Shown here piece after piece: positions 8,801 to 10,632 of a DNA stretch of 64,000 nucleotides. Numbering within the stretch: the first letter of the stretch is position 1; each line of letters begins with the position of its first letter. Position numbers and translations under genes: made by a program. The notes under the pieces are model-generated. The model was not told where the DNA came from, searched no databases, and saw only the letters and a list, made by a program, of their open reading frames with translations. The stretch is taken from assembly GCA_965637545.1 (NCBI GenBank), contig OZ281501.1, forward strand, positions 2,356,001-2,420,000. The letters run 5' to 3'. Origin of the DNA: Phallusia mammillata. Its lineage: Eukaryota.

Positions 8801-10632
8801 TATAAAACTTTCTTTTTGTCTTCATATCGTCGTGATAGTTCATTATTAGCAAACAAATAAATAAACCTAACTGCAATAAATCATTGTACACCAAGCCCAT
8901 TAAAGACGTCATACCGAATCAAACAGGTCACCCAAGCATTCTTGATTTATAAGTGAGTCTACCGTGATCGCTTGTCTGCATGAACGCTTCAGGCCTGACC
9001 CAGTACGGTATATGTTTACTGTAGCTAACTGCAATAAAAACTTACTAAAGGCTGTATTTTAATGTCTGCAAAACTCACCTATAGTCACACTAACACTGAC
9101 TGATTGTGCGTAGTAAACTTCATACACCACAAACAACTTTTTCACATCGTCTAATTCTGGCAATCTTTTGTCCATCACTAACTTGCCCAACTCCATGCTG
9201 AGGGAAATATCAAAACACTCTGTCCCATTGATTTTAATCTTTACGGCTTTTTTGATTCCATCCTTTATTCCCGAAATTCGATAAACATACCTATAGGTAA
9301 ATTTTAGTCTTATTTCTGATTTTAGTTTAAAAACAAAACTGTGAGAAAGTTTGTGTAATACAGGGTCGGCAAACTCTGGCACGCGTGCCAAGGTTGAAAC
9401 GCGAGGTGGTTTTTAATTGCACGCCAACCGATTTGCGTGTTTATATTAAAGTAACAATTCAACCTGTTACACTGTTTGTTTTCAGTTTTTATTATGCCAT
9501 TGTTTAAAATTCAGCCCTACGTGCACAAAACACTCTGCTTTCTCTATATTATTGATATCTGCTGGTACGAACCACTATTATTTAGAAAAACGTTGGCACG
9601 CGAGGACATTGACACATGGAAATAACAAGTAAATTGGCACGCGTCGCCTAAAAGGTTGCCGACCCCTGGCGTAATACATAACAATGTCGCCATTTTAGGT
9701 CCTGCTACTGTTCTAGTTTATGGCATTAAGCTAGTTTAAAGTATATTGTAAGAGTTATTCGATAACACTTTAAGTGTAAAAAGTATATTTTTTGTGGTAA
9801 TTATTTGTGTAATTTCCTTGGAGTTTACAACTTGAATGTTACATGGCGAAGACTTAGTATGTAACTAACTTTTTGTTGAATTGATAATCCGGTACTTTTT
9901 CCGGTTTCTGCTGGAACGCAGATTTGTCCACGTGAGGCGCTGTGACACTCGTCATTGAACCGATTATTGCGTATGACGCTTTGCCACTAGATGTCCCTAG
10001 AGCACGAAACTGTGCACATACGGTTGTTGTTAGTTTCTTCTAAGAAATATTACATTTAAATAAATTTTCAAGTGTTTTTTTGATTTAAAAGTACTGAAAT
10101 CAGGCATATGTTTTATAGAATTAGTTTTATTCTAGGTAAGGTGTCGTTTTTTATGAGTTTTTTTATTGAAAAAAACACATTTCGTATGCTTTGTTTAAGT
10201 TATGATTTATTATATTTGAACATACTGATTGCTGTCCTCTTTTCACAATGACACCGAACGGTACAAAGTGATAAGCTTCATCTAGAAAAGGCACCACCAC
10301 TGGTTCACGACCCAAAAGCTGATATCCAACATAATTTCTACAAAAAAAACGCAAAACTTTCCAATACAGCTGTACAACCTGTACTTAAGTCACATACAAA
10401 AAACAAAACTTTCCAATGTAGCTAAACCTATAATCACAAACAAAAAAACAAGCACAAAAATTTCAAATGTAGTTAACTTAAATTAACACCCAAAATAACA
10501 GGCAAAACAAAGTTAACAAAACTTTACGATAGAAACCCAAAAAAATTACACCTACCTACATAGTTCCCAAGCAAGACCTGGGTCACATGAAGTTAGTTTA
10601 TCGAATATTTGTCTGGGCATTGCCTCTTCCAT
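5819..10632 (-). CDS. Gasdermin-like protein (pore-forming-domain homology) with low-complexity C-terminal extension
   Basis: Exons 10632-10556, 10337-10226, 10039-9870 and 9290-9079 chain in phase and encode REPVVVPFLDEAYHFVPFGVIVKR, KYVYRISGIKDGIKKAVKIKINGTECFDISLSMELGKL and KKLFVVYEVYYAQSVSVSV. These align by eye with GSDME/pejvakin segments ([50 protein letters not shown]). Further exons at about 9028/9024-8910, 7801-7678, 7624-7369, 6673-6546 and 5877-5819 can be joined in phase and end ...NDPLPPPPDTESSSD*. The exon-5 frame is ambiguous. Confidence 0.65.
6734..6950. mobile_element. hAT-type MITE
   Basis: TIRs CAGGGGTTCTTAACCT / AGGTTAAGAACCACTG; perfect 8-bp TSD CTTTAGAT; internal ~31-bp tandem repeat. 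Confidence 0.9.
7931..8730 (-). mobile_element. Non-autonomous hAT (Buster/Charlie-like) element with transposase C-terminal remnant
   Basis: TIRs CAGTGGTCTTCAACCT / AGGTTGACGACCACTG; TSD ACCTAAAT/GCCTAAAT. ORF 8202-8408 ([28 protein letters not shown]...MRLSL) resembles the hAT dimerization domain. Confidence 0.9.
9361..9668. mobile_element. hAT-type MITE in gasdermin-like gene intron
   Basis: TIRs CAGGGTCGGCAAA / AAGGTTGCCGACCCCTG; TSD GTGTAATA/GCGTAATA. Confidence 0.85.

Follow-up and report, generated by a model that had tools for sequence, protein, structure and literature searches.

The 64,000-nucleotide window of Phallusia mammillata DNA analysed in this work (contig OZ281501.1, positions 2,356,001 to 2,420,000) holds on its minus strand a gene of seven exons, running from 10632 down to 5819, which is real, intact and conserved. 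It is probably the tunicate orthologue of the C11orf42 family (Pfam PF15668, DUF4663), present as a single copy, and its product is a cytosolic protein of about 300 amino acids (aa). By sequence this protein is no gasdermin; by fold, as predicted for the family members that we modelled, it belongs with the gasdermin pore-forming (N-terminal) domains, in a form where a conserved motif-bearing tail stands in the place of the repressor domain.

The family assignment comes from the exons themselves. Exons 1 to 6, each taken alone, match one and the same Pfam family, PF15668, colinearly over profile positions 4-340, with exons 1 to 5 scoring at least 25.1 bits against a curated cut-off of 25 bits. 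As this is true singly of each of the first four, the only ones given in a preliminary description of the locus, their recognition is far beyond chance. All six matches returned by a six-frame search of the genome with PF15668 (scores including 96.5 and 86.8 bits) fall inside the window, two of them beyond those four exons (7365-7544 and 6544-6690), and the gene is therefore single-copy. Exon 4 searched against 1.84 billion representative proteins brought up a 303-aa protein, 79% identical over 70 aa, recorded in RefSeq for Styela clava as XP_039274277, 'uncharacterized protein C11orf42-like'. To this a second search joined the 'C11orf42-like' protein of Ciona intestinalis and three further relatives, all with PF15668, and a profile search of a 5.8-billion-protein set with the family alignment found at least six proteins. 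No usable match came from a feature search of the ESM Atlas with exon 4.

Full-length identity of the window protein (about 297 aligned residues) is 76% to the Ciona and 73% to the Styela protein, as opposed to 34-36% to two distant members of the family. The seven-exon structure recurs at the Ciona locus, where each of the six introns falls at the same codon position as here, so that both full-length identity and common gene structure speak for orthology with the annotated C11orf42-like genes. The three ascidian proteins also have in common the colinear full-length profile match and three tail motifs, and their lengths agree (297-303 aa in Ciona and Styela, 299-309 aa here). Nothing essential differs between them; the one visible difference, in length and sequence, is in the loop at the start of exon 3, where the acceptor in Phallusia is uncertain. 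The link to human C11orf42 itself rests on how RefSeq names the orthologues and on their precomputed assignment to Pfam. At 7086-9558 of the Ciona locus, the orthologue has a replication factor C/Rad17-like AAA gene downstream, on the opposite strand.

The preliminary description had joined four phase-consistent exons between 10632 and 9079. Reverse-complement reading and assembly by script recovered all four on the minus strand at those limits, reproduced the peptide quoted for them, and found each to match PF15668; what it lacked were three further exons (7540-7369, 6673-6546 and 5877-5819), and an ellipsis in its peptide hid the first half of exon 3, where two acceptors are possible. All introns of the completed gene are GT-AG and all phases are compatible across exons. 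Exon 1 (10632-10556) begins with the ATG at 10632-10630, has 25 codons and two bases, ends at a donor GTAGGT and matches profile positions 4-27 (E-value 1.1e-05, 25.1 bits); the position of its intron is matched in the Ciona gene. Exon 2 (10337-10226; profile positions 29-64, E 1.4e-12, 47.8 bits) encodes a helix and strand region (...NYVGYQLLGREPVVVPFLDEAYHFVPFGVIVKRGQQS). Exon 3 (10039-9870; positions 86-124, E 2.3e-11, 43.8 bits) leads from a variable Ser/Gly/Lys loop to ASYAIIGS...PEKVPDYQFNK. It has two in-frame acceptors, one at 10039 (TTTCTTAG), with the stronger signal and the better pyrimidine tract, and one at 10009 (GTGCACAG), which gives a loop length nearer to that of the orthologues; either may be used, and the full product has 309 aa if exon 3 takes its long form and 299 aa if it takes the short one. 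Exon 4 (9290-9079; positions 132-200, E 1e-25, 91 bits) encodes the first beta-hairpin, one face of which is rich in lysine, and opens the second hairpin with its first strand (LFVVYEVYYAQSVSVSVTIG).

As exon 4 closes on a donor GTGAGT and not on a stop, the gene must go on past 9079. The remaining exons were defined by the genome search with PF15668, by reading, and by tblastn with the orthologues. Exon 5 (7540-7369; positions 203-258, E 1e-23, 84.5 bits) completes the second hairpin with its returning strand and takes the folded domain to its end (...REGRWK). Exon 6 (6673-6546) encodes a disordered proline-rich tail with the motifs RLKSDPLPRVP and RRNPQDVLPSVP; it matches profile positions 281-340 at E 0.012 (15.2 bits) and the orthologues at E 1e-12 to 3e-14 by tblastn. 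Exon 7 (5877-5819) gives the last 18 codons (NRRNDPLPPPPDTESSSD), the product ending in SSSD before a TGA at 5819-5821. By tblastn it matches the C-termini of Styela and Ciona at E 0.008 and 0.012 respectively; its acceptor TTTTTCAG and its phase both fit, and the intron position is again matched in Ciona. Three other candidates for the terminal exon, just below exon 6 (DFYKRHSLV*, GQAFGE* and GLVRSK*), were dropped because 5877-5819 matches the orthologue C-terminus.

The kinship with gasdermins emerges at the level of the predicted fold. AlphaFold2 models were built for two family members, 35% identical to each other. The first is that of the Ciona orthologue, from a 24-row alignment that included the window exons, and has a pLDDT (predicted local distance difference test) of about 90 over residues 1-240, with disorder in a loop (63-69) and in the tail (241-297). 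When this model is compared by Foldseek with the PDB, gasdermins fill the first 31 places (best E 7.3e-08), with a probability of 0.98-1.00 for most of them and of 0.80 and 0.93 for two bacterial gasdermin chains; these places include the pores of Trichoplax gasdermin, GSDMB, GSDME, GSDMA3 and GSDMD, as well as bacterial gasdermins and RCD-1. Its neighbours in the ESM Atlas are a cnidarian Gasdermin cluster (TM-score 0.53) and a bacterial gasdermin cluster. Both models give the same ranking, in which all gasdermin classes come first and CDC/MACPF follows only after a clear gap, and the closest solved structure is an N-domain-only gasdermin. A homo-trimer prediction for Ciona residues 1-240, in which the alignment went unused, scored 0.00 and is no evidence either way.

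The preliminary description had seen here, from local motifs alone, a highly diverged gasdermin in a probably tunicate lineage. The lineage was guessed correctly, as the best relatives are the Ciona and Styela proteins, and the kinship with gasdermins recognised in those motifs is backed by structure prediction: its proposed comparison by AlphaFold and Foldseek, carried out on family members, places gasdermin pore-forming domains first by a wide margin. The claim holds for the predicted fold of two members, with no sequence or profile match found. Nor is this a previously unknown, lineage-specific gasdermin, being instead an orthologue of the named DUF4663/C11orf42-like family, whose gasdermin-like fold was published for human C11orf42 in 2022 (PMC8986115). 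A literature search under DUF4663 found nothing, and one on gasdermin in tunicates returned nothing on the DUF4663/C11orf42 family.

In spite of this likeness of fold, the family differs from the gasdermin PF04598 proteins in several parts of its anatomy. The window protein is basic (isoelectric point about 9.2), without signal peptide or transmembrane helix, and its residues 1 to about 238 are predicted to form a folded domain in which a helix and a beta1-beta2 region are followed by two long beta-hairpins. The structural alignments begin only at about residue 20 of the model, therefore the family has an extra N-terminal helix, of some 18 residues, that those gasdermins lack. The long helix that follows takes the place of gasdermin alpha1 and has one basic residue only, and the VPFLDEAYHFVPFGVIVK segment takes that of beta1. 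The beta1-beta2 position is occupied by a short, variable and non-aromatic Ser/Gly/Lys loop, whereas the corresponding loop of GSDMD has an aromatic tip. The first hairpin reads YVYRISGIKD / IKKAVKIKING... and the second, long one KLFVVYEVYYAQSVSVSVTIGE / QYMDTTNRKFSHDRRMPIGF..., with strands of 23-26 residues in both models. Analysis of the strand faces gives three of the four strands of these predicted hairpins an amphipathic character, a hydrophobic face lying opposite a lysine-rich or serine-rich one; the returning strand of the second hairpin, however, is polar or charged on both faces, which sets it apart from gasdermins, and a distant family member is without ten residues at the tip of this same hairpin.

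Past residue 238 or so, no C-terminal helical repressor domain was found, only about 61 disordered residues with pLDDT below 50. This tail, the 61 residues after RWKR, has 14 prolines, is disordered in both models, and replaces both the helical repressor domain and the cleavable linker of the PF04598 proteins with three conserved motifs, RLKSDPLPRVP, RRNPQDVLPSVP and RRNDPLPPPP, whose form is that of basic residues followed by D/N-P-x-L-P-x-x-P. Across the family the core is acidic-x-L-P-x-hydrophobic-P. No DxxD and no conserved Asp cleavage site was found past the domain in the completed model and the orthologues, the Asp that follows the domain in the window protein being Glu in Ciona and Styela. 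A repressor domain with a cleavable linker is not universal, since Trichoplax and bacterial gasdermins do without. In the bacterial gasdermins (PF26164) a short peptide at the C-terminus keeps the protein shut until a neighbouring protease cuts it off, and the fungal RCD-1 acts as heteromeric pairs; for the window protein, by contrast, the predicted tail is disordered and undocked, and there is no evident partner gene.

Taken together, these parts suggest a gasdermin-fold module without the repressor domain that would keep it shut, where the lysine-rich hairpin face would bind membranes or partners and the tail motifs would recruit the protein to a partner. Such a non-lytic role, membrane or partner binding through the hairpin face and recruitment through the tail, seems to us the most likely one, and we hold it with fair confidence. 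It is inferred by analogy with human C11orf42, which is spermatid-expressed and vesicular and co-clusters with retromer and sorting-nexin proteins: spermatid-specific expression and interaction with SNX5 were reported in one study (PMC8564638), and vesicle localisation, together with co-clustering with SNX1, SNX2, VPS35, VPS29 and VPS26A in a retromer-like complex, in another (bioRxiv 10.1101/2021.06.22.449395). VPS29 is bound by Pro-Leu motifs in disordered regions, such as the DPLGPL of Vps5 with its upstream [K/R]-hydrophobic residues, and those of TBC1D5, VARP and RidL (PMC12000511, PMC8635440), whilst the window tail twice has basic residues followed by DPLP (RLKSDPLPRVP and RRNDPLPPPP). 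This is a resemblance only, known here from sequence, and as the most distant member reads DELP or DQLP, the core common to the family is L-P-x-x-P and not P-L; the likeness may serve as a lead, not as a result.

A bolder version of the same role is possible, although we think it unlikely: in the C11orf42-like proteins the gasdermin fold may be fixed in an open shape like that of the pore state and put to a new use at endosomal membranes, with the tail docking on VPS29. The lysine-rich amphipathic hairpins would then engage acidic membranes, and the repeated basic-DPLP motifs would enter the Pro-Leu pocket of VPS29, thereby linking the protein to retromer, perhaps in sperm differentiation. In a variant of this, the protein would be a gasdermin independent of cleavage, with partners bound to the tail controlling how it perforates or remodels internal membranes.

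Several observations weigh against our interpretation of the gene as a non-lytic gasdermin-fold relative. At the sequence level, the Pfam Gasdermin profile PF04598, the check put forward in the preliminary description, has no match at E ≤ 10 in any exon or orthologue; in the whole genome its best match, E 8.9, is a chance one on another contig. A profile made from eight family members had no match to PDB sequences at E ≤ 10 by hmmsearch, and phmmer with exon 4 against the same sequences gave nothing relevant, so that no sequence or profile similarity to the gasdermin pore-forming domain (PF04598; GSDMA3, GSDMB, GSDMD, GSDME, Trichoplax 8jyw/8jyv) is detectable. The structure was predicted on orthologues and not on the window's own spliced protein, from shallow alignments (24 and 15 rows), and the five models were uneven (pLDDT 59-78). 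Pore-state gasdermin chains fit both models better than inactive ones, by 20-40 aligned residues; this we read as a permanently extended hairpin sheet and not as proof of a pore, but it leaves a pore-like activity possible. The functional part draws on human high-throughput data and on motif resemblance. Finally, none of the 16 public runs of the species is on record as RNA, and in the four that may be guessed to be RNA (from three studies), compared with 5900-10800, there is no transcript of the gene and no splice joint: their contigs cover only the intronic repeats 6064-6391, 6720-7047, 7868-9015 and 9344-9671, with none on the exons. This empty result weighs neither for nor against the gene or its splicing. 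The human member is almost testis-specific (PMC8564638), and silence in arbitrary samples is therefore unsurprising.

A rival explanation would make the protein a working pore-forming gasdermin, lytic or secretory, whose control would either need no repressor domain, like that of the Trichoplax gasdermin, or depend on a short tail, like that of the bacterial ones. The two long hairpins of both models, the length of the second, the clear hydrophobic face on three of the four strands and the N-domain-only gasdermin as nearest solved structure would all suit a pore former, and since no canonical gasdermin was detected in the genome, the niche could be open; the absence of other gasdermins is weak evidence, however, because an exon-by-exon search with PF04598 is insensitive. 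On the other side stand the second hairpin, whose returning strand shows polar or charged residues on either face and whose tip is short of ten residues in a distant member; the beta1-beta2 loop without the aromatic tip of GSDMD; the alpha1-equivalent helix with its single basic residue; and the want of a DxxD or a conserved Asp cleavage site, the residue being D in some species and E in others. Human C11orf42 was judged to be without membrane-penetrating regions (PMC8986115). In principle, moreover, a pore former that is constitutively open, and that strong purifying selection maintains, would have to be kept in check by some mechanism, and none is visible. We therefore find a pore-forming gasdermin improbable, and a lytic function equally so: the lytic cell-death effector proposed in the preliminary description is left unsupported by a protein with no repressor domain, no conserved cleavage site and one strand of the second hairpin without a hydrophobic face, and the literature on the human member points to vesicle or retromer association and to spermatid expression, not to cell death.

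That the likeness to gasdermins might be no homology at all, arising as a modelling artefact or by convergence within the MACPF/CDC/gasdermin shape class, is less probable still. Identity in the structural alignments is only 9-19%, the profile searches are without a gasdermin match, the alignments behind the models are shallow and the five AlphaFold2 models uneven, and the TM-scores are moderate (0.44-0.53). Yet models of two members that differ at some two residues in three rank alike, with gasdermins on top and a gap to CDC/MACPF, and the elements come in an order that fits the local motifs noticed earlier; we consider this explanation very unlikely.

Conservation of the gene is also seen at the codon level. 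In public runs, two of the relatives are encoded uninterrupted on contigs of about 1.1 kb that have no introns and look like assembled messenger RNAs, and the joined form therefore exists in related species. Between the window gene and these contigs, which resemble complementary DNA (cDNA), identity at codon positions 1, 2 and 3 is 0.74, 0.85 and 0.38, and the nonsynonymous divergence (dN) is 0.21-0.25 with the synonymous one (dS) saturated, a pattern of long-term purifying selection. A decaying or silent pseudogene, or wrongly joined exons, might be read out of the repeat-filled introns and the lack of contigs on any exon in the four runs, but it is hardly credible given an intact frame over seven exons with canonical splice sites, 73-76% identity to distant ascidians with third codon positions randomised, intron positions the same as in Ciona, the joined form in the cDNA-like contigs of relatives, and a nearly testis-specific human member, for which silence elsewhere is expected (PMC8564638).

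The introns and the rest of the window hold other sequences of some interest. Intron 5 contains a short element at 6724-6960 with 26-nucleotide inverted repeats (81% complementary, 185 nucleotides apart), whose inner segment is in part duplicated in tandem; numerous contigs from all four runs resemble the element at 92-99% likeness, which marks it as a multi-copy repeat similar to miniature inverted-repeat transposable elements. Intron 3 has at 9344-9671 a repeat with, by eye, GGCACGCGTGCC-type palindromic ends, and as many contigs of all four runs match it and none the flanking exons, it is a multi-copy element and does not belong to the transcript. The repeat of intron 4 (7868-9015) is about 1.1 kb long, and the run contigs that match it differ by numerous substitutions and small indels. 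On the minus strand it holds an open reading frame (ORF) of 68 aa, 8202-8408, for which a Pfam search found no family and which we take to resemble the C-terminal part of a hAT-type transposase. Farther along, from about 48000 to 63900 on the minus strand, similar genes stand in a tandem array in which sets of exons recur, for example ...GEYSVVIKSPKPFN... with a transmembrane stretch VIALAVLLCCVSVIAMTLAI after it, and domains reading FANPSFQWAVGVSNISFNLSF...; three ORFs of the array were searched and gave no Pfam family at the curated cut-off. A 140-aa ORF at 20808-21230 on the minus strand, rich in Ser, Pro and Asp (PPPPYSVDD...) and without significant Pfam match, may be an exon of another gene.

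In conclusion, earlier work had already recorded the family, its annotation in other tunicates and its fold, which makes the discovery a modest one in this respect. C11orf42 is nevertheless a 'dark' conserved animal protein whose gasdermin-like fold had been noted once, on the human model only. The results of this work add that the family is represented in tunicates by a strongly conserved single-copy gene of fixed seven-exon structure, that the gasdermin fold is predicted to be kept across members only about 35% identical, in a shape more like the pore state than the inactive one, and that a conserved motif tail takes the place of the repressor domain. The value of the finding is raised a little by these pore-state-like models, by the motif tail and by the option of study in ascidians: as ascidians such as Ciona are genetically tractable, they would offer a practical system for a gasdermin relative that has no repressor domain.
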